A DNA stretch of 63,891 nucleotides, filler included, from Corallochytrium limacisporum Hawaii (lineage: Eukaryota > Protista > Pluriformea), in assembly GCA_002811645.1 (NCBI GenBank). It is 5 parts of 5 records of this genome, joined end to end, with 100 filler letters (N's around TTAATTAATTAA, not from the genome) between each part and the next. Parts side by side here need not be neighbours in the genome. Positions count along the whole stretch, not along the records: positions 18,392 to 36,726 come from PDIP01000167.1; 4 more parts are not named here. The stretch is one strand, 5' to 3'. Below, piece by piece: positions 2,258-35,900 of this stretch (position 1 is the first letter of the stretch; each line of letters starts with the position of its first letter). Both the position numbers and the translations under genes were made by a program. Below the pieces are notes generated by a model. That model made no database searches, was not told the origin of the DNA, and saw nothing but the letters and a program-made list of their open reading frames with translations.

Positions 2258-5200
2258 ACACACGCGCGGGTAGGTGTGGGAGGGGGCGTAGAGTACTAGT
2301 AGTTCAGCGTCGCCTCCGCGGCCCCCCCCCGGGGGGNNNNNNNNNNNNNNNNNNNNNNNNNNNNNNNNNNNNNNNNNNNNNNNNNNNNNNNNNNNNNNNN
2401 NNNNNNNNNNNNNNNNNNNNNNNNNNNNNNNNNNNNNNNNNNNNNNNNNNNNNNNNNNNNNNNNNNNNNNNNNNNNNNNNNNNNNNNNNNNNNNNNNNNN
2501 NNNNNNNNNNNNNNNNNNNNNNNNNNNNNNNNNNNNNNNNNNNNNNNNNNNNNNNNNNNNNNNNNNNNNNNNNNNNNNNNNNNNNNNNNNNNNNNNNNNN
2601 NNNNNNNNNNNNNNNNNNNNNNNNNNNNNNNNNNNNNNNNNNNNNNNNNNNNNNNNNNNNNNNNNNNNNNNNNNNNNNNNNNNNNNNNNNNNNNNNNNNN
2701 NNNNNNNNNNNNNNNCCCCCGGGGACCTCCCCGATTAAAACCCACCACCCCCCCCCTCTCATCCCGCAAGAAAACTAAAAAAAGTACTAGCACTCGGATC
2801 CGTTTTGGTTTTGTTTTTTTACCCTTTTGCTTTTTTTTGCGGTGTGCCCAAGAACGATCGACGAGTGTCTAGGGAGGAAGAAGTAAAAAAATGGTTGGGT
2901 ACACACAGAGAGTTGCAATGTGGGCCAAGGGGTGTACACCCAGCATCCCAGCGTTTGTATGCGAAACTCCGCGACGCGCCGGGGTTTTGATGGGAACCTG
3001 AGATTATCTGCTTGCTGCAGCAAGACAGTGTTTTGTACTGCAGCATAAAAAAACAAAACAGGTAGATTAGGATTTCTGCAACGGGAAAACACGACGACTA
3101 AAACAAGAGCCTACGATACTTTTCGATCGTCGGAAATGCCCGCAAGAACAAATCACCCGTTCAGGACTCTCTCTACACACAAGAAAAAGTTCGACCTATT
3201 CTCGTAATCAACGCAACCCCCCAATCTATCGATTCGGTGCCGGCAGTGCCAACTCATGGGCGGCCGACTTTCAGCTTTGGTTTTTCCCGTGAACAATCGC
3301 AGGCATACAGCACGGAGCCATAGTCAGCAACCTGGGCATCGCTGCGATAGCTTCGCTAACCGGTCGCAGAGTTCGCACACAGGAAACGGAAACCGCTCGG
3401 AAGGTGTTCAATGGCAGCAGGCCCGCACCATTAGGGCACCAAAATTCATATAAATTGTACTGGATTTGGGTGGGCTTGCGGGCGGCTTGTGCGCTGCAAA
3501 CTGATGGTACAAGATACGAATGCTCATGTGGGTACCTGCAGCATATTCCCATAGTCAATGAACCAAGTTCTTGATTCGAGGTAGATGCGGGAGGCTTTGG
3601 ATCGTTTGTTCCCAGCACTTTGCGGCGACTGCCCAGACACGGGGCGATCACCCTTGTCTTTAGCAACGAAATCTAATAACGGTACTGCCAGTAGATATGA
3701 CACGTGTCATCGAGTAGCAGTGCTTGTCGGCGGTGGAGGTGGCCACATATACTTCTGCGATCGCTGTCTCCGTGGTACTCTTCAAAGGTAGTGGTAAGTG
3801 GTAGCATCACCTCAATCTTCAACATCACACGGACATGCTGTGTATGATCGAACATCTGCCTGAGGACCCACGTATGCTGGCATGCACTCCGTGCACGTCG
3901 ACAGGTGCAGGTCTAGTTACATGCTGAAGGGTGCTGATGAATAGTGTTGCCACGTTTGGGACTGCAGAGATGCACATGAACCCTATTGCGGATCACATCC
4001 AATTCACTCGCTATCGTGTGGTTGGTCAGCACCTCGCTCACAAAGCGGGTAGCTGACTTATGGGGCTATGTGGGGGGTGCTCTTTCAGATAGTGGAGCCT
4101 TTACCACTAACTTGGACGGAGCAGATGTGCCGTTTCCCGGCGTCTACGCTGCTTGTCTGCGTGCATGGGCATGCAAGGCGATACAATGCATACGGAAAAT
4201 GCCGGATGACAATGGAAGCGACACATCCGTTTGTGCGTTTGCAAACCGTTGGTGCGAGATAAACATCACCAACCGCTCTAGGTCTTATCATTCAGTCTTG
4301 GGGTCCGTTGATGGCGGATTGTCTCGTAACATTTCCCTACGCGTCCCTGTGGTTCGATGGACGCCTGAACGCGCCTCTTGAACCGGGGTCGTACCAATGC
4401 GAATGGAGGAATACTTAGCCCAGTATTGGCCGGTGCCAGTCGTGCAATTGCATGTCGGCTGCTTGTATGGCTGTGGCTATGCGTGCATACCACATGTACC
4501 CAGTATGTGTCCTAACTGATGACAGATGGAGATGGCTCACCCGCCTGTCCTTCCCGCTTCTACAGGGACAAATTAACGTAAAACGAGGCAAGTATCCAAC
4601 GAAATAAGGAAACTATTACCGATAGGAGGTCCGTGTTATTGATGGCTTGCAGTTTGGGTCGTCGTTCTTAAGGATTTCAAAATTAATACATGCCTCGCCC
4701 ACTCCCCCCCCCTGTGCGTCAGGAATGTGCGCATACTGAGTCCTTGTTTAGGTATCCATTGTATTGAATGCTTATTAAATGAAATATTCGGGACACATAA
4801 TGACAGGCGAATGGAACGAATGCCTGCGAGGCAAAAGGGAAACCGATCAGTGAGTATCCAAGAGACAGTAATATAAAGAAGGGCTCTATTTTTTTTTCAC
4901 CTTCCTGCTCGTCTCTCTCCTCCCTTTTTCTCTCTCCCGACTACCTCTTTCTGTCACAAGCGCAAAACAAAGTAACAAAAGAAGAAGAACCAGAGAAGAA
5001 AAAGAAAGAAAGAAAAAAGGAATGATACGAAGAGCAAGGGAGTGAGACACAGGCGCACACACACACACACGCCCGCCCGCACGCACGCACGCACTGACAG
5101 AGTCGGTTCTGCGTCTAAGCGGCCCCCGGTAGGGGCCCAACTGGCGCTCTCGCTCATCTCCCTCTCTCTCTCTCTGTGTACCATGCGCTAGTTCTGTAGC

Positions 5201-5840
5201 TTTGCACGCCCAAAAGGTGTGTGTGTGTGTGACACTGACAGACAGCCAGCCAGCCAGCCAGCCAGCGAGCGAGATGTCACGGACAGACACCCGACTCTGC
5301 CACGATGGAAAATATTAAGTACCTTCACAAAAAAGGAAAGTATTTCTGAATCCCATACTTTATATATGTGTTCAGACATTCCTTTCTCGCCTCCCATACC
5401 TCCCCCTTTCTCTCCCGGCGTGCCAGGAGGTGGGGAGACGAGGCGGCTAAAGTAGGTCCAGTGCGCGCGGCTGGTTCGTATCGGTGTTATTGCAGGAGAG
5501 TGTTGCTGTGTCCAGTTTCCATTCTCGGTTGCTTCGTTCGTGTCAGTTTTTTACCATCTAACCAAGAGTAATACGCTTGCAAAAACTCTATGCCAAAAAT
5601 ACGGGCCTTTCGGTATGGAGAGGACCCCACACGGGTCCCCTCCCCAAGGTTCCGTCCTTCTCGGTACCTTCCTGTCAAGCGGTACACCGGGAGATAAACT
5701 CCGGGAGGGTGCGGTAGTAGATCTAAAGCAACAGTTCCGTGTGACACTTTGACACTCTCCCATTATCCATGACACGCTGGGCCATGTGTTCCTCCCGGGT
5801 CTTTCTGCCCTTCTTCCCTTTCTCCATTTCTTTTTTTTTT

Positions 5841-5844
<4 letters not shown>

Positions 5845-5929
<85 letters not shown>
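5845..5929. repeat. (CT)n microsatellite
   Basis: About 85-bp TC run with one interruption at 5881. Confidence 0.95.
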
Positions 5930-5933
<4 letters not shown>

Positions 5934-8900
5934 CGCTCAGCGGTTCCCGCCTTTTCTCTGATTTTCTTTTTCTTTGGCCTTTGCAAAAATCTCTATCCCC
6001 CCTTCCGGGGTCGTTGGTTGGTTGTTTCTGCTAGCCCCTGTTGAACAGGGGCCGGTACTTAAATGGAAGTAAAGGGGAATAATGGAAAGATCGACGAACG
6101 AGGAACCGATGCGATTTTGGTTGCATCCACGGTTGTTGAGGGGCAGCACTCTACCGTAACGGCCATACCCCGTTATGTGCGGGGCGGCGTGGCAATGATC
6201 GGTTAGCAATTTTCGTGCATGCATGATGATGTTCAGGTGGGGAAGGGGGACTGATCGTGGTGCACCTTGCTACTTTCTTAGATCTCCTGTCTGAGACGGG
6301 ACTTTTGAGTTTGAACAGTCCACTCCCTTTGTTCCGATGCGGTCGGTCGGAACGTGGTTTGGAATGAAGGTCAGACTGGCACGGGCTCTTAAGGCCTTAA
6401 TCTGTGTCAGTTTGATGTTGTGGTTACGTAAGTGTTACATTTATTATATAGCATGTAAGTATAAAGAAAACAAAAGAACGGGGGAGTGGGTGGGAGAACA
6501 TGTGCCACACTTGTGTGTTTAAGTTCATGATTTTGTGGCTGCTAAGCAATTTCAGCTCTGGGTTTTTGGTGGCTCGCAGTGGGGCGGCCCCCTCCCCCNN
6601 NNNNNNNNNNNNNNNNNNNNNNNNNNNNNNNNNNNNNNNNNNNNNNNNNNNNNNNNNNNNNNNNNNNNNNNNNNNNNNNNNNNNNNNNNNNNNNNNNNNN
6701 NNNNNNNNNNNNNNNNNNNNNNNNNNNNNNNNNNNNNNNNNNNNNNNNNNNNNNNNNNNNNNNNNNNNNNNNNNNNNNNNNNNNNNNNNNNNNNNNNNNN
6801 NNNNNNNNNNNNNNNNNNNNNNNNNNNNNNNNNNNNNNNNNNNNNNNNNNNNNNNNNNNNNNNNNCACACCCCGCGGGTTCTTCCACTTGTACGCGCACA
6901 CCACACCAACCCGTGAATGCACACGCTCAACCACCTACCACTCACGCACACACGCACCGAAGCATGCACACGCAACTCGCACACACACACACACGTCCGG
7001 TTAACGCGCTGCCGAAAGAAGATGGGCACATTTTTCTTGATTCCACACGCGAGACGAGGAAAACTAAGCGTGAGCTCCGCCCCGCGATCTTCCGTTAGAT
7101 GAAAGGCGCGGTACGGTTAGAACATGACCGTGAGTGGTGATTCGGGTGGGGTGTACATGGGAGAAGAGTCCTGTAGGTGATGAGCATGCATGCCCGGTTC
7201 ACGACGGGCTGCATACCTGAAGATCGTCCACCATCATCTTGTTTCGACCAAGCACGAAACAGGCTCACGACGATGCACAGTAAGGTCGTCCGTTCCCCCA
7301 TCCCGCTCTTCCTGTTTCTTGGGCGGAAAGCAATAAAGAAAAATCCTGAAAAGAGCCAAGAAAAATAGCAATCGACACAGAACACCGAACTGGAATGTTC
7401 GATCTCTTCGTCAACCACTTCCTTTGGTATTTTCTCTTCTTCCGTTACGATTGTTCCAAAGGGGATAAAAATATGTAAAAGGGATTCTCTCCCGGGGTGG
7501 GACACACGCAACAATCCGCGAGTTTTCTTTTTCGTTGTTTGAACAGTTTGTACACTTCCTACAACGTACAACAATTAATGGGATCTCTAATGCTATGACG
7601 AAGATCTCACCAATAAATACCATGGCGGGGCTGAAGAAGAAAAAGAACGAGCACACTCTGGTGTGTGTGAGTGTGTGTGCTTATCGACCGATCCCTCATC
7701 CCGAATGCGTGATACAATCAACTTTAAATACGACTGTATATCACAAGTCCAGTGCTCCCCCAAGGTCCAACGTTCAAGTAGATAGGGAGGACACGGTGTG
7801 GCGGGGAGGACTACTCGTTGATTTGTGGTCTGCATGCTTTGAACCAACTCTGGTACGCACAAAGTATTCCTACACCGGTAGATCCTGGAACCACATAGGC
7901 AAAACAGGGTTATACAGACTGTCAATTTCAATGTCATCCGATAGTCTCATGTCACAGTTTAGTTGTGCTTCCTTGGTTCACCACACTGCCGAATCAGTGG
8001 CCCGTATCGTCAAATGGGATAGCGTACGATACGTGCTGCTTATTACAAAGGCGAGCAGAAACTTCTTAAGTGTTTCCTTTTGTTTCTGTTCTTTCGCTAT
8101 CGTGTTCCAATTTCTCTTCATGTCTACATCGATAAGGTCCAGGAAAGGAGATCGCAAGTAGGCCAAGGCATCCTGGACACAGAGATGACTCCCTGGATTC
8201 AAGGTACACTGAATGGACAACAAAGGAGCGGCCCTGGGTACTGAAACTATGGAGAAACATGGACAAAAAGTTCGGCAACTAGTATGCAACTGTGATTGCG
8301 CCCTCGTCATTCTTTCGTCAATTACAATATATACAAATACAAAACACCCAAAAGTCTAAGTGCTGTTTTGAGAAGGAAAAGTGTTTTCAGAAGTAGACTG
8401 CTCTGCAGACGCGCTGCAAATCGAGCGGTCCCATTCCATTTCTTTCCCCTTTTTCTCTTTCCTTCCCATCCACTGTCCCTTTCCATATTTTTTTTAAAGA
8501 AAAGGGGACTGACGACGGGTCCGTCCGTTGGCTGTGTGTGCCCTGCTCCCCTTTTCAGTCTCTGTCCCTCTTCTTAGTAGCCGTTGTGATCTTTTTGTCG
8601 TCAATTGTCGTTCAAGGGGTTTTCTCATCCGGTTATGGGGCTTCGCCCGGGTCCGTGGATATGGTGCCAACATCAGAGCAACCGGGGAGGAACAGCGATC
8701 GACGGTGCGATGCGTATGTCGTTTAAGTGGACAACACTGAGTTAGCTTAGCTATTTTGCTTGCCATTGGGGCCGAACGAACTGAAACCTCCGGTATGAAG
8801 CAAACTTCCATCGGCACGTCGTAAGCCGATGCACGACTAGTATTCTCGCTAGTGCCACAGACAACCCACGTCTTCGACTTCCCTCTAAGTGACAACCATA

Positions 8901-18391: not shown

Positions 18392-21387
18392 GGGGGGGGG
18401 GAGCGCCGTGTTTTGTCTCGGTATTTATTGTTTCACTGCTCCATTATATTGCTTCTACGGCGACGTAAATCATCGGAAAGGATTGACTTGGGTGTGCCGG
18501 TCGAATGACTCAGATGTCCGAAAGTCATTTCGACCAAAAAGCCCCGAAGACTGCTTGGAGAAATGCAGGCACACTATATTCCATACAATAAGTAGAGAAT
18601 ATAGGTTCCCGTTTGTGGCCGGGGACAGGCGGCGATTTGCAGATCTTCTGTCCCGAGCACCGCGCAGGCAAGGAGCGGAACTGCCCGCATTCACGTTATC
18701 GAGAGAACGGGGTGCATGCAATGCCCGGTGGCGTTGTAGCCGTGTATAGATAGTCAATGTTTTAAATCATGCATGGTCAGCAAACACCAGCTGACGGATG
18801 TATTCTCTGTGCTCGTTAGCCTTAGTATGTGTCGACTGTCCAGCTTGCCCACGCACCAGCCCTATTGCCATCACAAGCTTACCGTTATGGGCTGGCTGAG
18901 GCCTACATCGTGCTGTTTCTGACCCTCCGAAGACACAAAGCATCCAAAGATACTGGGCAGCCACTAGCGGACTTATTCAGTTCAACACCCGTAAGATGAC
19001 CTCAAACAGACCTCAGTTATGCGAGCCGTGCCCACAATTCGAGCGCCTTAGCAATCAAATGCACCGGCAAAGGCCCATTTTCAATGTCCCCATAAAATGT
19101 TCGTTTCCACAGGCTTCCACTCTTGATTTCCGACCCGGGTCGACACTTTGAATTCTTGCTCTGTCGTAGTAATCGTCGGCTTTAATGTTCCTTTGGCAGG
19201 GACAGAAGGACAGGGGGCCCAAATGCCAAACCGCTCGCGGAATTAAAGGCCTGCACACCTCAGAGCACAACCACGCGAGTGGAGAGACTATGGTCGTGCG
19301 GGGAGAATCCACATAAATTCCACAACGTTTCTAACGCAAAAAAACAAGGGTCGAAGTACCACCGGTACTGCTTTTTTATTTATATTTTCCGAGTCCCGAA
19401 GAGTGGTGCACGTTGCGCTGATGGCTCCTTTGTTGCTACCTGCGTAGGAACGTGCTTTGGTTCACGACCCAGTGGTGTCTAAGGGAGCGAAATCGATGTC
19501 GCGTCACCTGGACGGACTGCTCTCCTCTCCCCGGGCATCGACGGGGTCTGTCCGAAACGGAGAAATGAAATAGTGAATGTAGGAGAAACAATTTCGATGA
19601 GGTTCGGGTACGTTGTGCAAGACATCTTCCCGAGAAAGGATATGTTCTCTTTCACTATCCCCGACCAGTGTAACGGTGTCGGTGGACCTAGGTGGTGAGC
19701 ATCTGATACCGTTCCGTAAAATAGTGCCAGTAAACTGAATCACTCACCATTGTGTCCTGGGTAGTTTGACTCTAGGTCCTGGTATGACATGTGAGGAGGC
19801 CATTCACGATGGAACAGTCCCGAGCAATGCTTCAAGGTATTGTTTGTATTCCGCTATCCGAAGTCAGAAGCCATCGTGCATGCCCTGCGGACCTTTCTGG
19901 CGTTACTGTTGAAAGCGAACATTGGATGGCGTTGTATGCTACTGCAGCATACATTGTCTTTCCACACCGGGTTTCTCAGTTGTTCGAAGATGAAGAAGAA
20001 TTCATTTCGTACCATTCTGTACATCCCGTCCGTTTCTTCTTTCGTGGTAGAACGGCAAGCTAGACGATGGCATTGGTAATCTATGCAATTTGGTGGTTTC
20101 GCGATGAAGGTTATTATAAAATTCTTACCGCTCGCAACCCCTTCTAACCTCCTCTTTCTCGGGAGCTATTCCCGCCTGCTAAAATACAGGCAGGGTGGGG
20201 CACCGTTCACATCTCCTTCCGCCGAAAGTATAAGGCCTGGGATTTTGTCGCTAGGGTATGACAGGGGCACACTTGTCACCGGTTATTTCCATACTCATGA
20301 ATGCACCGTGCTATGTAACGGGGTTACACGAGGTGGACATCTACAAAGTGAAGTTCCATCGCGCTGGGGCAGATGATGAGAGTTCTGAAACGGTTTGTTC
20401 CACTCTGAGAACGCTATAGAATCAAAAATGGCTCGCGATGATCTTTATTATTGTTTCTGAATATGGTTCACACCATTCTACAAGGTACCAACTTGGTAGC
20501 AGACTAGGCTCGTTAAATCTATAGAGAAAGCGAAAACCGACGCCTGGTAGTTCCTGAATCGGCTTTGTAGGGGGATTCCCAATTTCTTGTGCCCCGCGCA
20601 CCACTAGTCACTCCTCTAAAAACCCAATCCAGCCGTTTTGTTCGGCCGTCTCGGCCTTTATTTTATTCTTCCCTCTGCTGTCCCTGATTTCTTCTCATAT
20701 TCGTCAGTTCCTGACAGTTTGCCACAGTCAGGGCATGGTGGTACGGGTGTCGTGAATGGGCCGGGCGAGTGGTGGTAGCACTCCACGAAGTTCTTGTTTC
20801 GATTTGGAGTTCACGGGCTATCCGAAAGGTTCGCGTTGTAGAGGGAGAGCAGGAGTGGACAAATCCGGAGGGGAAATGAAGAACGATCGGCATTCCCGCT
20901 CAAACCCCCATAACCCCCCACCCAACAGGCCGGAGGGTGGCGAGAAAGCACGAAGGGGGGGAAGGGGGGGAAGGGGGGAAACCGGTGACCTTGGCTGCGG
21001 GGTTTGCGCAGATGGTGCGGGTCACACACGTCCGAAAGCAGAGTCTTTTGTTGCGTTCCTGCATATGATATCCGTTAGCTCCCAGTCAACTCCCATGAAC
21101 GGACAATGATATGGGGTACAAAGCCCCGAACGACCCAGGGCACGGTATGATACACTCATTTCGCTACTTTTCCATAATGTCCCGGATAATGCAATCCGTC
21201 TCCAAATGGGGAAGCACTTTGACGGTTGAAGTTCCTTTGCGAGTCTCTGAGCCAGTCATTTTCTTTACTGTAAGAAGTTTATTTAAGAATCCACATAGAA
21301 GATCCAAGATGAGGAAGGCTTCAATGGTCTTGAATTCCGACTCTCATGCAGAACGAACGGTGACTTTTAGCAAGAGACTGCATAGCC

Positions 21388-24300
21388 ATGGATCTCGAAG
21401 AAGGTCTTGACGGTTATGAAGGGTTTTTAGCCCGACTTGATGTGCGCACAGAGTTTCCTAATGATGGGTCGATTGAAGATCAGGTTAAGGAGGCCAAAGA
21501 TGCTAATATTATTGCGATCTTTGCCAAATCAGGATGTCCCTTCTGTCACGAATCCAAGAAGATTCTCTATGAGGAAAATATAGATCCCACAAAGATGACG
21601 GTTTACAATATAGACAAATTCAAGGAGTCTCACGCTGGTACAATCCAAGACACATTGCAGAAGTTGACTGGATCACGAACAGTCCCCAGTATCTGGGTCC
21701 GTGGTACGTTTGAGGGAGGTTGCAGCGACCTTAAGGCCAAGCAGCACAATGGCACTCTGGACGGAATCCTCTCCGGTCTGCGTGTTCCAACATCAAAGGC
21801 CGTGGATCTCAACGCTTTCTCTACTATAAAACATGATAATGGCAAAGTATCTGATGATGAGACCCACATGCTACTCTCGCCCGGCATCCGCAATGTCAAA
21901 GGCAATGTCCACGATGTCGAGAACCGCATGTCATGGCCTCCAGCTGACGAGGACACTGATTCTGATGAGAAAGTGATCCTTAGCACCCTGTTCTACTTCC
22001 CACATACCCTGAATCGCTGGGTAGTTCAGGTGAGCGGTGTCCTCGTGTTCATCACCTGCATTATTCTGGCTGCTTTCTACGATCATGAATATGTCAAGTG
22101 GGCCTCTCTTGGATTTTTCTTAGATTTTGTAGTCCGTTTCATGTTTGGTGGCAAGGCGAGTATCATTGGATCGCTGGGGGCTTTGATAGTGTCCATTCCG
22201 AATCCAGAGCCGCAATTCGTGGCTGGTGCTCCCAAACAGTTTGCACAGTTTATCGGTGTCTTCTGCAGTGGCATGGCTGCTCTGCTCTTTTTTGTCAATG
22301 CACCGGAGGGTGCAGTAGTCTTCCTGGCGATGTTGGCCGGAGGATCGGGGGGTGAAGGCTTCATCAATTTCTGTTTGGGATGCAAAATCTTTGCCATGGG
22401 TGTTAACCTGGGTATTGTGCCCAAAAATATTTACAATGAGCACATCGTGGCCAAGCGTGAGGTTGAATGGCAGTACAATTTCCGGTTTGGTGAGTATCTA
22501 AATAAGGTGGTTCCGGTACCATCCTATGCGCTCACTCAGGCCAGCCTGACCAGTGACACAAAGAAGAGCACTGAGCACGACAAAACGGGTGACGAAGGAT
22601 CTGCCACCCCGAAAACATCAGGTAAACATGTTGCTGTGGCCAGCGGTAACGTGTCTAAAGTGGGCACAATCGCCACCCATACCACACCAACCTGGCAGTG
22701 GTACGTCAATCCCAAGAGCAAGCCCACAGCAGTCGACTTCCGCTGGAAGGCGGGCAAGGGCGACGACGTTGAGATGCGACACATGAGCATCATCAAACAC
22801 TGCCGTCCGACCATCTTTACTCCAGGTGCCATTTTAATTGGTCTGGCGGTTTTATTCCGCATCATGACTGCCTTCCCACGATACAATGCTCCGGAAGAGC
22901 TTTGGAAAACGTTCGCAATCCTTGGCGCTATTTACGTAATTTGGGCGATTTGTGTCTATGGAGCTCGTTTGATTCTCTATCCACGCAAAGTCTACAAGGA
23001 TTTGACCCACTTCCAGTACCGCAACTTCTTTGCAATGCCTGGAGTGATCCTGTCATTTAGTGCCTTCCTTGCCCAGACCCAGTACGCTCTGGATCTGGCC
23101 AATGGCGATGACTCTGGCTATGGCGACCTTGCCAAGGCGCTTTTTTGGATTGGTTTTATCTGGATCGGTGTCCTACAGCTGTTCCTATTTGCCGAGTGGT
23201 ACGTACACAAGCATGAACTCCAGCACATCACTGGTGTTATCTTGCTGCCGGCTGTGGCCGGTACCACCCTTGCTTTGGTAGCTCCCATAATTGACCTAGA
23301 CTACCTGCCCTTGGCGCAGCTGCTCCTCGGTGGCTATGGTGGTCTTGCACTATTTCTGCTTATTCCCTTTATGCAGAAGATCCAGGTCCAACCCTTCCAT
23401 GTCGATGAGAAGCGGAATGGTCCCAATATCTTCCCAGTGGCGGTCAATGTCCTCGCCATTGCCACCAGTGTGGTGCTGGCTGGCAACGGTTGGTTCGATT
23501 TCACCGGGTGGGTCCCGCGTGCCCTGTTCGGTCTCGGCATTTTGCTGGAGCTCGCCATCTTTAGCACAGTGTTTTGGAACTTTCTCGGTCGCATACACTT
23601 TGTGTTCGAGTATTTTGCTTGGGGGTTCAGCGTTCTGATCATCGCCTTTGCGACCGTGCTCTTTGATCAGTCCCTGAGGACCGATGCCTCCTGGGCATTC
23701 TCCTGGATCTGCATTAGCATAGCCTGCTATGTTAACGCTGTTCTGTTCCTGAACTTTGTTGAATCTCTGCTCCACAAAACCATCTTCCTCCGCAAGGATG
23801 AGTGGGGCCCAATTTCCTTCATGAAGATGACTCACTATGCCATGCGTGAGATGATGGGTGCGATTGAGGCGACAGTAGCTGCCATTGACGCGGAAGCGGC
23901 CTGTACAGAAGAAGCTACGGACCAGACGTCATTGGCCCGTCTTGCCGGACGCTGGGCTGAGTTCCAGCGCCTCTATGCCATCCACAGTCGCCAAGAGGAT
24001 CACGTCTTGTTCCCTACCGCCGACCGCTTCTTCCCGGGCTTTGCCTGCACCCAACTCTGTGCTTTGCACTCCGAGGAGGAGGGCCTGGTCGAGAACTTCA
24101 ATTCTGTGGCCCTGTCCTACACTGAACAGATCAAGACTGGGGTCCGCACTGCCAAAATGGGAGAGCTGACAGAGGCGTTTGCTGCCTTCAAACGCCATTT
24201 TGAACACCATCTGTACACAGAAGAGACAACAGTCGTGAAAATGATGCGTAAGTATCTGAACTCTACATTACAGATGAAAGTGAACAAGAAATGCTGGCGG

Positions 24301-24534
24301 ATCATGAGTGAGGAGGAACAGGAGTTCTTCCTGCCCACCGTTGTGCAGAATCTTCCCGTTCACTACATGCGTGTAAAATTCATTCGAACTTGGATGTGGG
24401 CCCAGCCTGAGATGAAGGAAATCATTGGACAGATAATCTTCCGTGGCGTCGACACCATGACCTGGCTGCGCATAGTCCGTGACATTCCTGATCTCATTCC
24501 TCGCAACCTAAAGTATTGGCACCAGTACAAATAA
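21388..24534 (+). CDS. Multidomain membrane protein: glutaredoxin + DUF4395 + TDT/SLAC1-family anion channel + hemerythrin (HHE) domain
   Basis: Grx: IFAKSGCPFC (21535-21546), TVP, GGCSD. DUF4395: hydrophobic helices with AGAPKQFAQFIG (22231) and FCLGC (22369-22383). TDT: about 10 hydrophobic segments (~22790-23790) with RLILYPRKVYKDLTHFQYRNFF (compare SLAC1 helix-2/3 KCIFYFEAVKREYFHPVRVNFF) and FEYFAWGF (gate-Phe helix). Hemerythrin (~23809-24260): THYAMRE, HSRQEDHVLFP, LHSEE, HLYTEE. Confidence 0.85.
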   Translation: MDLEEGLDGYEGFLARLDVRTEFPNDGSIEDQVKEAKDANIIAIFAKSGCPFCHESKKILYEENIDPTKMTVYNIDKFKESHAGTIQDTLQKLTGSRTVPSIWVRGTFEGGCSDLKAKQHNGTLDGILSGLRVPTSKAVDLNAFSTIKHDNGKVSDDETHMLLSPGIRNVKGNVHDVENRMSWPPADEDTDSDEKVILSTLFYFPHTLNRWVVQVSGVLVFITCIILAAFYDHEYVKWASLGFFLDFVVRFMFGGKASIIGSLGALIVSIPNPEPQFVAGAPKQFAQFIGVFCSGMAALLFFVNAPEGAVVFLAMLAGGSGGEGFINFCLGCKIFAMGVNLGIVPKNIYNEHIVAKREVEWQYNFRFGEYLNKVVPVPSYALTQASLTSDTKKSTEHDKTGDEGSATPKTSGKHVAVASGNVSKVGTIATHTTPTWQWYVNPKSKPTAVDFRWKAGKGDDVEMRHMSIIKHCRPTIFTPGAILIGLAVLFRIMTAFPRYNAPEELWKTFAILGAIYVIWAICVYGARLILYPRKVYKDLTHFQYRNFFAMPGVILSFSAFLAQTQYALDLANGDDSGYGDLAKALFWIGFIWIGVLQLFLFAEWYVHKHELQHITGVILLPAVAGTTLALVAPIIDLDYLPLAQLLLGGYGGLALFLLIPFMQKIQVQPFHVDEKRNGPNIFPVAVNVLAIATSVVLAGNGWFDFTGWVPRALFGLGILLELAIFSTVFWNFLGRIHFVFEYFAWGFSVLIIAFATVLFDQSLRTDASWAFSWICISIACYVNAVLFLNFVESLLHKTIFLRKDEWGPISFMKMTHYAMREMMGAIEATVAAIDAEAACTEEATDQTSLARLAGRWAEFQRLYAIHSRQEDHVLFPTADRFFPGFACTQLCALHSEEEGLVENFNSVALSYTEQIKTGVRTAKMGELTEAFAAFKRHFEHHLYTEETTVVKMMRKYLNSTLQMKVNKKCWRIMSEEEQEFFLPTVVQNLPVHYMRVKFIRTWMWAQPEMKEIIGQIIFRGVDTMTWLRIVRDIPDLIPRNLKYWHQYK

Positions 24535-24723
24535 GGTCCCATTCCGGTAGATCAAAAAAAATTGAGAGAAGGACAATCAGTGGTTCTAGCTTGCTCGAAA
24601 GAGACCATACTTTAATTTTGTCATATACATTACATTATACATGGAGTCCACAATATGTTTCTAGTGCAACCAAGGACTTACTGTCTAAGACATGGGAGGA
24701 AATGAGAGACTTCGGGAGTCCCA

Positions 24724-25845
24724 TCAAATACGTGACTCAGACTGATGCATACTGGCCACGTATCCCAGTTTGGGATCAACTTTGCCGACCAGCAAATCAT
24801 CGAACAGTTTACTGACGTTCTCTGGGCCTTGAATACGCTTCACCTGCATCCATCGGCCAGCGTCGTTGACGAATTGCGCCCAATCGGCGCCAGTCTTGCG
24901 CTGGAACTGTTCGGGACCCCATTCTTGGTTGCGCTTTTGCGCTTGCGCAGGTGCAAAGAACAACAGTGGCTTCGGGCCGGGCAGATCATCATTTCGACCA
25001 CGGTCGTCCCAAAATGTCGCACCCACACTGCAAGAATATTTGAGATTGTCCCGCCAATGATGATGAATGTTTCGGCGCAATTTGTTGCTCCCGGCCATGT
25101 CGACAAAAACTGTTGATGTGGCACAGTCCAGATCCCGTTCCAAACGGTCATAGGGAACCACAGTATCGTAGAAACCAAGATCTTCACAGAAACGGACGTT
25201 GTTTGGGCTGGTCAAGCCAATGATTTGCACCGGGTGCCCCTGACGCTGAGCCAACTGGAAAGCCAGTCCGATGGACGTCTTGCTTGATGCACTGCTGATC
25301 AGAACAGACTTGGCACCGTAGAACTTGTTGTCCTCAAGCCAGTCATCAATCAGCCAGGAGGTCATGTACAGAGGACGCAAAAGCTCAATCAGTGCCTCGG
25401 CATATGGAGAATAGCTCGGATCCGCTGAGCATCGGAGGTAGTTGTTGTAGACTGGAGCCAGCGGCTTACGGTACTCAGCACCGTCCGTGAAGCCGTTGCG
25501 CGTGACCTTTGTGGGGATGAGGCTGACGTACTGCGCAGGACAGTAGGCACCGTAGAAGCGCTCACCGACGGATACACCCTCGCACTTGGACTGCACCACA
25601 TCCGCGAAACCCCAAACAGGGAAATGCGCCCATTGTTTTGGATCTGCGGTGGGCCAGAACTCGAAGTATTTCATGTGATTGCCAAAGGAGGCATAGGTGA
25701 TGTTGTTTGAGGTGAAGGCAAATTCATTCACCTTCATGACAACCTCTCCTGGCTGAAGATCCTTGAGAGAGATCTCATTGCTAATGACACGCGAGCGTGT
25801 GATGTCCTTGCGCGTTACTTGGAGGGCTACGTTCCGAATCATCAT
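24724..25845 (-). CDS. DUF2855 family protein (putative MDR-like NAD(P)-binding oxidoreductase fold)
   Basis: Family-typical blocks FAFTSNNITYA, YFEFWP, PVWGFADVV.S, GERFYG, LRPLYMTSWLIDD, VLISSASSKT, IGLTS..N, VDMAG, VGAT.W, LPGPKP..FFAP. Confidence 0.85.
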   Translation of the reverse strand: MMIRNVALQVTRKDITRSRVISNEISLKDLQPGEVVMKVNEFAFTSNNITYASFGNHMKYFEFWPTADPKQWAHFPVWGFADVVQSKCEGVSVGERFYGAYCPAQYVSLIPTKVTRNGFTDGAEYRKPLAPVYNNYLRCSADPSYSPYAEALIELLRPLYMTSWLIDDWLEDNKFYGAKSVLISSASSKTSIGLAFQLAQRQGHPVQIIGLTSPNNVRFCEDLGFYDTVVPYDRLERDLDCATSTVFVDMAGSNKLRRNIHHHWRDNLKYSCSVGATFWDDRGRNDDLPGPKPLLFFAPAQAQKRNQEWGPEQFQRKTGADWAQFVNDAGRWMQVKRIQGPENVSKLFDDLLVGKVDPKLGYVASMHQSESRI

Positions 25846-26770
25846 TGCGTTGTATGTGACCCTTTCCTTCTGCTTTCGAACCTACGAAACTCATTAATCC
25901 AAGGACTGACGTACTATCTAGCACTCAGGCCCCTTAAATACCATTTGCCACTGCTCAGGTCAGCCCCCCCCTTCGACCTCAACCAAAAGTGACTCCGCAC
26001 ATCTGCGAAACACCGCTCTCCTACCCTCCCCCCCCCCTCCCTTCTTTGCCCTCTCTATCACACTTTCGGCAGCGTCATTGCCTGGTCATACCCGTACATT
26101 AAAAACCAGGAGCACACGGTGGTATTAGTGAACCCGTCACGCTATCATCATTCTACACCACGGAAGCCAAAAAGGAGGGGTGTTGAGGGAGGCCCTTGGA
26201 TTTTCTCTACGCACTCTTTGCCCGGAACTACTGATCTTTTTCCGTCCTTGTTCCCCGAAAGGTCAGGGAGTCCCAAAGCCAGATGAAGAATTATCCAAAA
26301 GATCCCGTCTCGCTCCGGCACTGGGCCCGTATCCTAATTATAGAGCCGCCAAAATATGGGAATTGGGTGTCAGAGGAATGGGAGTCTATTTATTTCATTA
26401 TTTCCTTTCCTCTTTTTGTGGGTTGCACAGCAGGGAACCAAGAAGACCACCTTACCCTCGCTCTACCCCTCCCCTCTCCAGGCCCACAGCGCGCCGGGGG
26501 GCCTAATCTTCACTTTGCCCCCACCTAGGCCATCGAACCCGCCTTGTCGAGTGCGAAAGGACCCCGCCTTGCGCGGAGGGTCGGCGCACGCGCTGGCCAT
26601 TTGGTGCATTCCCAAGTGCCAGGCTGTTGTACAGATTCGTTTCCCTTTGTCAATATTAGACTACTTAAGATTTGTGTGCCTTCATATTATGTTGAGTGCT
26701 TCTATTTATATTTCTGAGCAGAGATCTAGTATGTTGGGCTCGTCGCTATCGGTCATGTCTGTACATAGCC

Positions 26771-27709
26771 ATGGAGCACGGGTTTGTGAACCACTATGAA
26801 ATTCTGGGCATTGTTTGCCCAAATCTGTTAGCAGGTGAAAAGATAGCGAATGATACGATACGTACGGCCTACCGCAGACTGGCATTGCAGTACCATCCGG
26901 ATAAGAACCAAGGGAATCCGACTGCAATTGCAAAGTTCCATTCTCTTTCTGCATCCTTTGAAGTCCTGAATGACCGGCGGGCAAGGGAAGCGTTCGACGC
27001 AGTCCTCAAAAGTAAGCAATGGATCAGACACCAACAAAATCAATGGACTGTCGAAAGACAGAAGCTGCGGGCGGATCTTGAACGGCGTGAAGCTCAGGCG
27101 CAGATGGAGAATGCGAGGGCTGCGTTCGAAGTCGAACTCAACCGCATCCGGGAAGACAACCATGCAGCCCTGAAACAATTCCAACGGACCCTGCAAGAAG
27201 AAATTGATGCACAAGAACGCGAAGATAGTCGACGCAGGGCACTGGCAGCAAGTCAGCAGATCTCCGCCCAGCAGGCCAGTAACTCTGCTGTGCAATGGCA
27301 GCAGAAGACGCTGTCCGTCCGGCTCAAGCCAGACTTCTGGTCAGAGACCTGCGAAGAGTCCAAAGCCGAAGCAGAATCCAATCTTCGAAAGCAATTTAAC
27401 AAGGTTTGCGGTGATGACGAAGTTCAGAACATTGTCATCGCCAAGGGTGGCAAAAAAGTCATGCTCGAATTGAAGTCCAACGACGGCTGTGAGATTGCTC
27501 TGCAGGCTAGCATTCCAGGAGTGGCCAAAGTCAAGAGGGTCAAGCCATCCCATCTGCCGTCTTCTTCTGTCCCTGTCACAGATGGTGCATCTGTACCGCC
27601 ACCCCAAGTGCTTGATGATGCGCTGCAGCGGGATATTCGCATTCGCGCTGAGATGATGTCCCACACAGATTTTATTGCCCTGGAAGACAGGATACTTCGG
27701 TCCCTGTAA
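26771..27709 (+). CDS. DNAJC17: DnaJ protein of DNAJC17/Cwc23 type (spliceosome disassembly co-chaperone)
   Basis: J domain (HYEILG, AYRRLALQYHPDKN), then RQKLRADLERRE coiled coil, a degenerate RRM-like segment and a terminal DF..LEDRILRSL helix. ATG at 26771. Confidence 0.75.
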   Translation: MEHGFVNHYEILGIVCPNLLAGEKIANDTIRTAYRRLALQYHPDKNQGNPTAIAKFHSLSASFEVLNDRRAREAFDAVLKSKQWIRHQQNQWTVERQKLRADLERREAQAQMENARAAFEVELNRIREDNHAALKQFQRTLQEEIDAQEREDSRRRALAASQQISAQQASNSAVQWQQKTLSVRLKPDFWSETCEESKAEAESNLRKQFNKVCGDDEVQNIVIAKGGKKVMLELKSNDGCEIALQASIPGVAKVKRVKPSHLPSSSVPVTDGASVPPPQVLDDALQRDIRIRAEMMSHTDFIALEDRILRSL

Positions 27710-28105: not shown

Positions 28106-28774
<669 letters not shown>

Positions 28775-31183: not shown

Positions 31184-32911
31184 ATGTCACTAATTACTCC
31201 CATCTCTAGCAAAGAACCAGATGCAGCAGATCTGAAGCGCAGTGAAGAGCTGGAGAAGTGCCTTCGATCTTTTGATCTATTCGAATCGGAAGCACAGCTG
31301 CAGAAGAGGCAGAATGTTTTGGGTAAGCTGAACCGGCTGGTAAAGGAATGGGTGGTTGAAGTCAGTCAGGCACAAAACATCCTCGATGCAGAGAATGTCG
31401 GGGCAAAAATCTTTACTTTTGGGTCATATCGTCTCGGTGTACATGGTAAGGGTGCTGATATCGATACGCTGTGTGTAGCACCTGCCCATGTGACGAAGGA
31501 GGATTTTTTCGGTGCGTTGGTCACAAAACTGCGGGAGCAGCCGGAGCTGAACGAGTTGACGCCTGTACCTGATGCTTTCGTGCCCGTTTGCAAGCTTATC
31601 TTTGATGGCATTGACATTGATTTGTTGTTTGCTCGTATTGACCGGCACAGCATCCCGGACGACCTCGATCTACTGGACACGAGCGTTCTGAAGGGAATAG
31701 ATGCCAAGGACCAGGCCACAGTGCGGTCCCTAAACGGGTGCCGTGTGACAGATCAAATCTTGCGGTTGGTTCCTAAGGTACCCAGCTTCCGAATGGCGCT
31801 GCGGTGTATTAAGTTGTGGGCCAAGAAGCGGGCCGTGTACTCGAACGTCATGGGCTTTCTCGGTGGTGTAGCCTGGGCCATGTTGGTGGCCAAGATTTGC
31901 CAGCTTTTCCCGAATGCGGCACCGAGCACCATTGTGAGCAAATTTTTCAGGGTGTACAGCATGTGGAAGTGGCCCACTCCTGTGCTGCTGAAGGAAATTG
32001 AAATGCACCACGAATTGAACTACACAGTCTGGAACCCAAAGGTCAACCGCCGTGATGCCCAGCACCTGATGCCCGTCATTACGCCGGCGTACCCTTCCAT
32101 GAACTCGACGTACAATGTCAGTCAAAGCACGAAGAAGGTCATGCTGGGGGAATTTGAACGCGGAGTGGACATTATGAGCCGACTGGAGTTGGGAGAGGCC
32201 ACGTGGGACGAACTATTCGAACCCTCGGACTTTTTCTACCGCTACAAGAACTACATTCAGATCCTCGTCAGTGCCACAACAGAGGAGAACTTTAAGCTCT
32301 GGGAAGGCTTTGTGGAATCCAAGCTTCGTCATTTGATTCTGCGCCTGGACATGGTGCCGCAACTGCTGATTGCGCATCCGTACATTTCTTCATTTGATCA
32401 ACACAACGAGGCCGAAAGCACCTGGCAGACATCCTTCTTTGTCGGGCTCAAGGCAGCCAGTGCGGAACAGGTGGCTCAGCCGCTTGCGGAAGGCAAGAAG
32501 CCCGAAGTGGACCTGACCTCGGTTGCTCAGGAGTTTGTAACACTCCTGGAGGGATGGGAAACCAAGACGGAGGATATGACGGTGCGTTTGAGCAATGTGA
32601 AGCGGACCAATCTTCCCGCATTCGTGTACCCTGACGGAAAACGTCCTGCACGCAAGCGTGCCAAGTCATCGCATCCACGCAAGGATGGTACCAATGGCAC
32701 TGCCGATAAAGACACTGCCACTGCCACCGCTGAGGGTGATGCGGAGCCCAAGCGTCGCAAGACTGACAAAGAAGTCGAGAAGGCCGCGGGTGCAGACGGC
32801 GAAGACACCAACGCCGGCATGCTTGACATTAGTGAAAGCGGTGACCATCCTGGAGTGGTCAACAGTGCCATGCAGAACAAAAACCTCAAGCTCAACATGT
32901 CAGTTAAATGA
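31184..32911 (+). CDS. PAP1: Canonical nuclear poly(A) polymerase
   Basis: FTFGSYRLGVH.GADIDTL nucleotidyltransferase motif, VPDAFVP, RSLNGCRVTD, IKLWAKKR.VYSN..GFLGGVAW, HLMPVITPAYPSMNSTYNV, W.GFVESKLR; basic NLS-like tail. Confidence 0.95.
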   Translation: MSLITPISSKEPDAADLKRSEELEKCLRSFDLFESEAQLQKRQNVLGKLNRLVKEWVVEVSQAQNILDAENVGAKIFTFGSYRLGVHGKGADIDTLCVAPAHVTKEDFFGALVTKLREQPELNELTPVPDAFVPVCKLIFDGIDIDLLFARIDRHSIPDDLDLLDTSVLKGIDAKDQATVRSLNGCRVTDQILRLVPKVPSFRMALRCIKLWAKKRAVYSNVMGFLGGVAWAMLVAKICQLFPNAAPSTIVSKFFRVYSMWKWPTPVLLKEIEMHHELNYTVWNPKVNRRDAQHLMPVITPAYPSMNSTYNVSQSTKKVMLGEFERGVDIMSRLELGEATWDELFEPSDFFYRYKNYIQILVSATTEENFKLWEGFVESKLRHLILRLDMVPQLLIAHPYISSFDQHNEAESTWQTSFFVGLKAASAEQVAQPLAEGKKPEVDLTSVAQEFVTLLEGWETKTEDMTVRLSNVKRTNLPAFVYPDGKRPARKRAKSSHPRKDGTNGTADKDTATATAEGDAEPKRRKTDKEVEKAAGADGEDTNAGMLDISESGDHPGVVNSAMQNKNLKLNMSVK

Positions 32912-35900
32912 AAGAATTGAATGTGGTGGCCGTACAAGAGAGACTAAAGTGAGCAATTACGTGCACCCCTATTCCTGGCCCAGTCACCCCTGGACGCTCT
33001 CCTTGCGAACACCAGCAGGAACGGACGTTTGCGCCAACATGAGGGCAACCGTACCTGAGAGAAAGTCGGGATCTTTGCCGTTTGAGCCCGCCCGTGAGCA
33101 TGCACGCGCCATCAACACCAAATTTTATATATCCATGCATCATCAACCATTCTCTTTATCATACCCATCATCATTTCCATCAACATCATCGTATCAACAA
33201 ACAAAAAACCGCCTAACCTAAACATCCAAATAAAACCGTCAAAACCCACACAAATCTGCCGTAGATGATCTCCTCTGGCAAGTGCCCCTTCATAGCGTAA
33301 TCACCCCAGGTCCTTGAGAGGCCGCCGACCAAGACCGAATCACCAAATGCACACTCGGTGTCGAACCACTTTGCAACGCTCCATCTGACCACTTTATTCA
33401 CACATTTGCCCGGGGCTTGTCGCCCCAATCCCGCGCCACAGAGGTGAACTTGGTATAAGGAGGGTGGTGAAGCGATTAATAATTGGACCCCCACCCGAGG
33501 AAAACCCGTCTGCCCCCCCCCCCTGGGGACGGCCCGGGAGCCTCCCGCTGCCCGCTGGTAGCAAATGTACCAACAGAAAACACGAGCAAAAAAAAGGAGT
33601 AAAAATTGAGTGTTAAAAGGTGCGGGTACTTTTGCTACCGGGTGGTGCCCCTATCTGTCCGCACCCGGCTGCTGCGAACTGATGTTACCTTCACGGTGTG
33701 TGGCTGGATTCTGCTCCCTCACGTTCCTGACCTTCGCTTAGTTTTTGGTTTAAAAATGGGGGTCCCCTCCCCTCCGGCCCCCCCCCCGGGGGGGGNNNNN
33801 NNNNNNNNNNNNNNNNNNNNNNNNNNNNNNNNNNNNNNNNNNNNNNNNNNNNNNNNNNNNNNNNNNNNNNNNNNNNNNNNNNNNNNNNNNNNNNNNNNNN
33901 NNNNNNNNNNNNNGGGGGCCCCCCCCCCCCCCCCCCCCCCCCCGGGGGGGGGGGGAGGGGAGAGAGAGAGAGAGAAGGGGGCCGCGGTACCACTGGTAAC
34001 AAAAAAAGAAAAAAAAGGGAAGGCCGAGTGGCGCCCACCGAAAGGGAAGTGTTGGGGGGTCACCCAAGCAAACAGGCCCCTGGTGGTACATAGGCAAATA
34101 CGTCAGGCTCCTTTGCGGGTTGGTACGTCTTGGGTTTCACTTTTTGCACCCCTCCCCCCTTTCTCCCCAACGTCGTGTGCGGACGCGTGTACCAAAATAG
34201 TTGGGATGGCACCCGACATCTGCCACAGACGAAGATATTGACGCAGATGTGTACTCTTCCTACTGCAATCAACCTCGGACTCAAACCCCCTCTGAACATG
34301 ATGGCCACGATTATCGTGTTGGTGAGGATATCGGTCGGAACAAGCCATGCCAACTCGGAAGAACCCCAGTACACGCCTCCTGCTGCCCAAAAGCCCATCA
34401 ATACATGATCCAAGATCAAGTCCGTATTTGTTCAATGGGACATCCTGGAACATGGTAGCTGACTGTCTCTTCTTTGTTAACAGTTTGTGGCTTTCCTATC
34501 TCTCGCTGCTGGCATGGAACTTGCGAGGTCCGTTCATCGCTTGGTTGGGCCTACGCGGCTGCCCTCCATTTAACTCGCTGCTGTCCGTGCCTTTCTCAGC
34601 AGACTAGACTTAGGTTCTCGATTTGTATGCTTCTTTCTTCTTCGCTGTAGGTGGTCAAGTGACTGACCTCTGACTCCTCTCCTGATAACGGCGGGTTTGC
34701 CGGGCCGGGGTGCAACCGACCAGGGTGTGTCAAACAAAGCATTCCACAAGAATCTTTCCAACTGCCTCATTTACATATATATACACACACACGTGTGTAT
34801 TGGGTCCGGTGAGCAATCGGTACGGTTTCGTGCCTTGGTCCATGTCGTGCCGCGAAAGCATCACCCGAACCTGATGCGAGCCGGGTAGCACTCCTCCTTT
34901 TTACAGGGAGAGTTGGAGATTCCACACGGGGCGGGGGGCCGGGGCGGGCGGGCATGAGGGNNNNNNNNNNNNNNNNNNNNNNNNNCCGGCGGGGCGCAAG
35001 GCGCTTTTGGTTGCTGACAAACGCCAACCAAAACACCGCCCTGCGGCCGCCGCAAACGTTCAAAATGGTCAAAGGACGAGCCAGTGAAATCTGAAAAAAG
35101 CAGGGAAGGGAGGAAGGGCAGGCAGCAGTAAAGGAGAGGCAAGGAAGGGTTGGTCCCAAAAAAAGGAAAAATGAAAAAAACAGAAAAAAGGAACAATGAA
35201 AAAAATCAGGCATCGGAGCGGGTGCAATAACAGCCACGTTGACCCACTCGACCTAAAATAAAGCAAGCGTCGCTGCAAGCGCTCGTCGTCGTTGTTGGAC
35301 AAAAATGTAAAATTAAGAAAACCGAAAAAGAGGAGATAGCGGGTGTTGAGGGGGTTAGAAGGGGGTAACACAAAAGAAAGGGAAAAGTTAAAGTACACGG
35401 CTATTCAAAGCTCCCCAAAGGAAATTCAATATAGAAAACAAAGAAAGAAGAACCCGGACCCGCGGATAAAAAGACTGGACAGCATCGGTGGTTGCGTTGG
35501 ATCTGATACTCAATGTATACGAACCCACTGATGCAAACCCCTCGTCTCCCCCCCCCAGAAGAGACCAAAAGATGCTTGCAAAAAAAACTAAATAGACTGA
35601 ATAAAAAGATAAGATAAACTACAACAGAAAGGAAAAAACTAATAAAAAGGAATCCATAAAAAAATAGAAAACAATTAGGCAGGGGTGTAGAAGGAAGGGA
35701 GGGTGTGATTTTCCCCTTTGTGTATCTCTTCTTTTTACGGAATGCCTTCCCGCTGATCCGGGCTTAGAGAGTGCACAGAGAGAGAGAGAGATCACCGCGC
35801 GATAGTGGGCCCATTGCGGGTGTCGGGAGTGCAGTGCCCGTCAAGCACCGGGGGAGAAGGAGGGAAGGGAAGGGAGGGTGTTGTCCCTCCGAGCATGCAC

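Follow-up and report, generated by a model that had tools for sequence, protein, structure and literature searches.

A eukaryotic family of TDT/SLAC1-type proteins with fused glutaredoxin-DUF4395 and hemerythrin modules, represented by a gene of Corallochytrium limacisporum

Channels of the TDT/SLAC1 family are known as stand-alone pores, such as TehA, or as the kinase-regulated channels of guard cells. The termini of SLAC1 and TehA are cytosolic, and a phenylalanine on helix 9 (F262 in TehA, F450 in SLAC1) occludes the pore. The family includes sulfite and tellurite systems, with Ssu1 moving sulfite and TehA acting in tellurite resistance. In other proteins, hemerythrin-like domains serve as reporters of iron, O2 or reactive oxygen and nitrogen species, and the stability of FBXL5 is set by the iron loading of its hemerythrin. 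According to a domain survey, hemerythrins are mostly terminal in (bacterial) signalling proteins (PMC4919030). Here we describe a gene from Corallochytrium limacisporum Hawaii (assembly GCA_002811645.1) that lies at positions 21388-24534 of a 63,891-nucleotide stretch of DNA joined from five parts of this genome (hereafter the window), in the part that comes from record PDIP01000167.1. The gene encodes a glutaredoxin, a DUF4395 membrane module, a TDT/SLAC1-type pore domain and a hemerythrin domain on a single chain. An earlier note, made from the sequence alone, had proposed these four modules in this order within an uninterrupted open reading frame (ORF) of 1048 amino acids; translation bears out the frame, and Pfam, profile and fold matches bear out the modules and their order. 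The protein is an uncharacterised TDT/SLAC1 variant with unprecedented fused sensor modules, and it represents a whole family rather than a one-genome curiosity. Its parts are listed below in window positions; Pfam matches were judged against curated gathering scores, and all four families scored above them in the profile check that the earlier note had suggested.

21388-24534, + strand: the whole gene, a single ORF of 1048 aa plus stop codon, colinear from end to end with homologues that have the four domains.
21469-21792, + strand (aa 28-135): class I dithiol glutaredoxin domain with CPFC (aa 50-53, nt 21535-21546), TVP (aa 98-100) and GG (aa 110-111, as GG-C at 110-112); Pfam Glutaredoxin PF00462 at aa 42-108, 44 bits against a cut-off of 22.9.
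21793-21969, + strand (aa 136-194): linker 1, acidic in composition and disordered, with predicted local distance difference test scores (pLDDT) below 50 at aa 152-194.
21970-22497, + strand (aa 195-370): DUF4395 membrane module with four membrane helices, GAPKQFA (PKQFAQ at aa 282-287), E323 and FCLGC (aa 328-332) with C329/C332 (nt 22372-22383); Pfam DUF4395 PF14340 at aa 212-337, 65-70 bits against a cut-off of 24.5.
22498-22797, + strand (aa 371-470): linker 2, rich in Ser, Thr and Lys and mostly disordered, with pLDDT below 50 at aa 386-432.
22798-23787, + strand (aa 471-800): TDT/SLAC1-type 10-helix pore domain with FAWGF (aa 743-747) and the gate phenylalanine F747 (nt 23626-23628) on helix 9; Pfam SLAC1/TDT PF03595 at aa 483-791, 42 bits against a cut-off of 27.9, covering model positions 13-328 of 331.
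23788-24255, + strand (aa 801-956): hemerythrin/HHE four-helix bundle with H816, H866xxxE870, H894 and H941xxxE945/E946; Pfam Hemerythrin PF01814 at aa 808-952, 33.3 bits against a cut-off of 25.3.
24256-24531, + strand (aa 957-1048): helical C-terminal extension, conserved in alignments, with pLDDT mostly above 90.

The gene is genuine, single-exon and from an intron-poor marine eukaryote. On the + strand, 21388-24534 translates as an ATG, 1048 codons and a stop with no interruptions, and 27 nt before the start codon, whose context (gccATGg) is favourable, there is an in-frame TGA. At a GC content of about 50%, a run of 1048 codons without a stop has a probability of about (61/64)^1048, near 1e-22, so the length of the frame is not a matter of chance. 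A Logan contig of 10,807 nt from sequencing run X1 covers 20900-25000 without a single difference; X1 may be the source sample, and the contig is therefore weak as independent support. The Logan search also returned small fragments at about 100% identity from the run of another organism and from a marine metagenome.

Each of the other particulars in the earlier note has a counterpart in the analysis. Every motif it named (CPFC, TVP, GG, PKQFAQ, FCLGC and FAWGF) occurs in the translation, and the polar linker that it placed between DUF4395 and TDT is linker 2. Its pore of about ten transmembrane helices with a gate phenylalanine corresponds to 10 helices between aa 474 and 795 of the AlphaFold2 model and to F747, which falls on F262 of TehA in the profile alignment (WAFSFP in TehA, FAWGFS here). 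The full set of hemerythrin histidines and glutamates that it described is found as well, conserved across the family and aligned with the HxxxE motifs of FBXL5.

The assignment of the pore domain comes from family profiles, which were required for both the TDT and the hemerythrin parts, as single-sequence searches of the PDB with these parts gave nothing useful. The TDT family profile matched SLAH3 (E = 5e-38), TehA (5e-37) and SLAC1 (7e-32) over the whole domain. Foldseek comparison of the model gave template modelling (TM) scores of 0.85 to 7en0 and 0.87 to 3m71, structures of SLAC1 and TehA, and 35 of the 36 family members retain the gate residue F747. The C-terminal profile in turn found the FBXL5 hemerythrin as its closest solved match (9e-7), followed by YtfE (7e-6), and ScdA was also matched. 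The hemerythrin helices span aa 810-839, 846-881, 885-917 and 923-947 in the model. Each of the candidate iron ligands (H816, H866, E870, H894, H941 and E945/E946) is kept in 31-35 of the 36 members. The extension always follows the hemerythrin domain in the family and carries the motifs WAxPE, G1014 and PEIIPRG (PDLIPRN here); it matched no Pfam family.

At the other end of the protein, the glutaredoxin domain matched Grx2 and Grx1 sequences in the PDB at E of about 1e-12 and the fold of human Grx2 (2fls) in Foldseek with a TM score of 0.90. It scored 87.0 bits against TIGR02180, the NCBIfam equivalog for eukaryotic glutaredoxin, whose cut-off is 87.25. Among the members that bear a glutaredoxin, the first active-site cysteine is kept in nearly all, mostly within CxFC or CxYC. 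The DUF4395 domain is modelled as four long hydrophobic helices with a pLDDT of 92. In the family alignment the PKQFA motif (P282-A286) is conserved, and C329 and C332, which are invariant or nearly so, sit just past helix 4 at its cytosolic end, where a short helix begins that is followed by an amphipathic one. These two cysteines cluster with the conserved polar residues K283, Q284 and E323 at one face of the membrane. We found no solved relative of DUF4395 in a PDB fold search, which returned only generic helix bundles (best Z 7.8), and a fold search of the Atlas with the DUF4395 model returned DUF4395 clusters only. A word-indexed homologue search with the DUF4395 segment alone gave no matches, and a literature search found no published function for this domain.

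The full-length AlphaFold2 model has a pLDDT of 87.1 and a predicted TM score (pTM) of 0.87, with disorder confined to the two linkers, and these values suggest that the domains are held in fixed packing against each other. The last 30 or so residues of linker 2 are conserved and form a small hairpin before the pore domain in the model; homologues carry linkers of about 50-100 aa at the corresponding place. The model contains 14 membrane helices, an even number, of which 4 belong to DUF4395 and 10 to TDT. Lysine and arginine are concentrated in the loops on the side of the glutaredoxin, linker and hemerythrin (20 in loop 327-473 and 3 in 531-543), while five of the seven loops on the opposite side have none and the remaining two have one each. 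The helix counts of 4 and 10 and this bias place the glutaredoxin, the CxxC and the hemerythrin on one side of the membrane in the model. If the TDT termini are oriented as in SLAC1 and TehA, the glutaredoxin, the DUF4395 CxxC, linker 2 and the hemerythrin would all be cytosolic, and from there the two terminal modules could act on the pore. The N-terminus is acidic and by eye unlike a signal peptide.

An exact look-up of the window protein in assemblies gave no record, a word-indexed search with the whole protein returned only the protein itself, and the family surfaced in an exhaustive search of 1.84 billion representatives, which gave 1722 hits, 84 of them below 1e-30. We mapped domains in 214 fetched proteins with hidden Markov models built from the family alignments, glutaredoxin columns included. 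The order glutaredoxin-DUF4395-TDT-hemerythrin was found in 60 of the 214 and no protein had another order; 35 of the 60 are representatives of 50%-identity clusters, the window protein among them, which leaves at least 34 others. Four-domain members occur in green algae (Mesostigma viride, Ostreobium quekettii, Tetrabaena socialis PNH09480.1, named 'Glutaredoxin-C6', Pedinophyceae sp. and Myrmecia bisecta), a red alga (Porphyridium purpureum KAA8499144.1, named 'S-type anion channel SLAH3'), brown algae (Ectocarpus fasciculatus and Sphacelaria rigidula), a cercozoan (Papus ankaliazontas), diplonemids (Diplonema papillatum, Lacrimia lanifica and Namystynia karyoxenos) and ichthyosporeans (Creolimax fragrantissima and Pirum gemmata). 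Its reach across five or more major eukaryotic lineages makes it probable that the family is old and matters to the physiology of algae and protists. Among the members are several single Trinity or MMETSP assembled transcripts, so these relatives carry the four domains on one mRNA. No other member is more than 35% identical to the window protein; a quick tree places it on a long branch as sister (SH-aLRT support 100) to the Mesostigma viride protein, with which it shares 33% identity. The earlier note had stated that no characterised protein with this architecture was known. That part stands, as a literature search found no paper on the four-domain fusion or on any characterised protein that has it; the architecture itself is widespread in eukaryotes and not peculiar to one genome, and sequences of the family are already public under automatic names. 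It is thus less singular than the earlier note supposed, yet has a better claim to biological importance.

Environmental DNA holds the same arrangement. In seven full-length environmental loci the order is the same and on one strand; three of the seven are in a single frame and the rest change frame, which fits introns. Three GC-rich environmental homologues (L099 2887-6195, L098 and L097) keep the domain order across many short frame-shifted pieces, a fragmentation that fits intron-rich genes in other eukaryotes.

The two halves of the protein also exist separately. Glutaredoxin-DUF4395 proteins that lack TDT and hemerythrin are found, for example a 264-aa protein of Seminavis robusta, as are TDT-hemerythrin proteins of about 625 aa, extension included, that lack glutaredoxin and DUF4395 (L089 98-1969 and L087 769-2646). 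The hemerythrin ligands are conserved in these stand-alone TDT-hemerythrin proteins too. One of them, P0103, is encoded on a dense, bacterial-looking contig of 72% GC, and another, P0080, is 43% identical to it. On the 72% GC contig the stand-alone gene adjoins a gene for a He_PIG-repeat protein. A related-locus search with alignment A8 gave 10 loci that look eukaryotic and no bacterial TDT-hemerythrin context, and a search of metagenomes with alignment A7 gave nothing.

DUF4395 itself also occurs as stand-alone bacterial proteins, mostly in Acidimicrobiia and other Actinomycetota and also in Chloroflexota. All 66 of these in which it could be called have a second CxxC 19-20 residues downstream, which the fused eukaryotic forms do not have. 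From this sequence pattern we infer that the fused glutaredoxin may stand in for the second CxxC as redox partner, which would fit its absence from the fused forms. Within 6 kb of DUF4395, none of the bacterial loci contains a gene for a TDT, hemerythrin or glutaredoxin protein. The joining of the glutaredoxin-DUF4395 and TDT-hemerythrin modules looks eukaryotic in this sample. A gene for a TauE/SafE sulfite exporter directly adjoins DUF4395 in 13 of 66 bacterial loci, and in 5 loci a metallo-beta-lactamase-rhodanese fusion of the persulfide dioxygenase type lies within three genes; L052, L064, L071, L073 and L078 (about 5170-5953) and L002 (2007-2837) are examples of such neighbourhoods. Two more metagenome contexts pair DUF4395 with TauE and a metallo-beta-lactamase-rhodanese, and with a ThiF-rhodanese and a cysteine desulfurase, respectively. 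The TauE link is confined to 2 of 13 DUF4395 clusters at 60% identity, and most contexts are unrelated. These neighbourhoods give a weak hint of sulfur oxyanions, sulfite or persulfide chemistry, which we treat as a lead and not a finding. Some bacterial DUF4395 loci have an FAD/NAD(P)-binding oxidoreductase nearby. In L001 (104-6598) DUF4395 stands in a same-strand run with Prok-JAB, ThiF-rhodanese, SrpI-like, cysteine desulfurase-like aminotransferase and RuBisCO-like genes, which looks like a sulfur-carrier or sulfur-salvage cluster.

Around the four-domain gene, the following genes were recognised in the window.

24724-25845, - strand: DUF2855 protein, a 373-aa ORF with a full-length match at E = 2e-101.
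26696-27709, + strand: DnaJ-domain protein, an uninterrupted ORF.
28106-28729, - strand: Rab-type small GTPase, an uninterrupted ORF.
31184-32911, + strand: canonical poly(A) polymerase, an uninterrupted ORF.

The DUF2855 gene converges on the four-domain gene, with about 190 nt between their stop codons. The uninterrupted neighbouring ORFs, together with multi-kilobase gaps free of ORFs, indicate an intron-poor, gene-sparse and not compact eukaryotic genome. No convincing ORF was seen in the 3 kb upstream of the four-domain gene, and no tRNA genes were found in the piece. A purine-rich G/A repeat (gggggaagggggggaagggggg) occupies 20940-20985, some 400 nt ahead of the start codon; it has many 31-nt variants in run X1 and is a dispersed or variable simple repeat. 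Runs of N, which show up as X runs when ORFs are translated, mark assembly gaps inside the scaffold at about 33800-34000 and about 34950-35000.

With the gene, its four folds, their order, their conservation and their topology established, we can propose how the protein might work, from iron binding and electron transfer from glutaredoxin to CxxC through to gating and the anion that is carried. We consider it somewhat more likely than not that the protein is an anion channel or transporter regulated by a glutaredoxin-to-CxxC thiol relay together with a di-iron domain, such that efflux is set by redox and by iron or O2. The suggestion of the earlier note that sensing or catalysis at the ends is wired to anion export is a reasonable one. 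The core is an anion pore of the TDT/SLAC1/TehA type that keeps the gate phenylalanine of its family. At the N-terminal end, a glutathione-dependent dithiol glutaredoxin is tethered to the DUF4395 four-helix bundle with its CxxC at the cytosolic face of the membrane; the two most likely form a thiol-disulfide relay, and the target of the glutaredoxin is likely to be this in-chain CxxC rather than free substrates. At the C-terminal end, an FBXL5/YtfE-like di-iron bundle with its extension could, by analogy with FBXL5 and with the hemerythrin ends of bacterial signalling proteins, report iron, oxygen or oxidants. Anion efflux would then follow from pore opening or protein stability as set by cytosolic thiol redox and iron/oxygen status. 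The fixed domain order and the high full-length pTM argue for physical coupling of the four parts. Several points limit this proposal or count against it. The glutaredoxin of some members is monothiol (CPFS or CPFT), so a strict dithiol relay cannot apply to the whole family. A complex prediction of glutaredoxin (25-140) with DUF4395 (195-370) scored 0.02, a value that speaks neither for nor against binding. Hemerythrin-like domains can also act as enzymes or iron donors, as in YtfE/RIC, instead of as sensors. Our literature search found no functional data for any family member or for DUF4395, and we found no RNA contig over 21388-24534 among Logan contigs, the sole possible one (run X7) covering 24694-25000 in the neighbouring DUF2855 gene and not the four-domain ORF.

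The gap in RNA coverage is also what could be said for the ORF being an artefact of mis-assembly, of read-through into a neighbour or of untranslated intron sequence in the linkers, as could the low complexity and poor modelling of both linkers. The earlier note had likewise raised a mis-join of separate genes. We regard all of this as highly improbable: the separately assembled X1 contig, even if it may come from the source sample, matches 20900-25000 exactly, the same order recurs in the 34 other cluster representatives, in single transcripts of relatives and in environmental contigs, homologues have linkers at both of the same places, and the neighbouring genes are uninterrupted ORFs too. 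The separate occurrence of glutaredoxin-DUF4395 and TDT-hemerythrin proteins would suit a division of labour in which the pore is constitutive, the glutaredoxin-DUF4395 part has an activity of its own and the ends control abundance, with the hemerythrin acting as an FBXL5/BRUTUS-like iron/oxygen stability switch. FBXL5, whose iron loading governs protein stability, is indeed the closest solved match; yet the fixed order and high pTM favour physical coupling, and the fusion has been kept across very distant eukaryotes, so we think control of abundance alone quite unlikely.

Catalysis coupled to transport is a further possibility, rather unlikely in our judgement, in which glutaredoxin-DUF4395 would be no regulator but an enzyme or carrier site for sulfur or chalcogen compounds such as sulfite, thiosulfate, persulfide, selenite or tellurite. 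The pore would move the compound and the hemerythrin would tune the process. The sulfite and tellurite systems within the TDT family would agree with this, as would the active-site-like grouping of K283, Q284, E323, C329 and C332, the TauE/SafE and metallo-beta-lactamase-rhodanese neighbours of bacterial DUF4395 and the two sulfur-themed metagenome contexts. However, the TauE link is seen in so few DUF4395 clusters, the other contexts are unrelated, bacterial DUF4395 has none of the three partner genes nearby and DUF4395 is without known chemistry. The proposal of a redox- and iron-regulated pore can also be put more specifically, in a form that we consider very doubtful: the family would be a self-contained sensor-effector that vents toxic oxyanion intermediates, for example sulfite or nitrite, out of the cytosol when the iron-dependent reductases acting on them fail, the hemerythrin reading iron or O2 and the glutaredoxin-DUF4395 relay reading or processing thiol-reactive sulfur. 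If the venting form were true, direct gating by a metal centre and a disulfide switch would be seen for the first time in a TDT/SLAC1-type channel, and DUF4395 would gain its first assigned role. For the more general proposal, a built-in membrane CxxC fed by glutaredoxin and a di-iron domain would be a new mode of control for TDT/SLAC1 channels, and anion efflux would be tied directly to the redox and iron/oxygen state of the cell. Diplonema papillatum, Creolimax fragrantissima and Porphyridium purpureum, which have four-domain members, are genetically tractable.

The protein can be set beside known systems part by part. With class I dithiol glutaredoxins (human Grx2, yeast Grx1/2 and plant GrxC) it shares the fold, CPFC, the TVP cis-proline and GG at 30-36% identity, but unlike them its glutaredoxin is tethered to a membrane protein through an acidic linker of about 60 aa. 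With bacterial DUF4395 it has in common FxFP, GPxFSP, PKQFA, CLGC and a glutamate before the CxxC (LEA in bacteria; E323 within GEG here), and its predicted DUF4395 fold is as in the bacterial form (TM 0.77-0.84 to an Atlas cluster), whereas the bacterial proteins are about 150-190 aa and have no fused glutaredoxin, TDT or hemerythrin. The FBXL5 hemerythrin and YtfE/ScdA (RIC) share the four-helix bundle and the H...HxxxE...H...HxxxE pattern, although the match is remote (E about 1e-6 to 1e-4), and unlike in FBXL5 and YtfE the putative di-iron domain here shares its chain with a membrane pore and precedes a conserved extension of about 90 aa. Finally, SLAC1/SLAH and TehA have the 10-helix pore fold and the helix-9 gate phenylalanine in common with this protein, the solved members being only 14-18% identical to its pore domain; TehA has no extra domains and SLAC1 is controlled through phosphorylation of disordered termini, whereas here the ends of the pore carry folded glutaredoxin-DUF4395 and hemerythrin modules.

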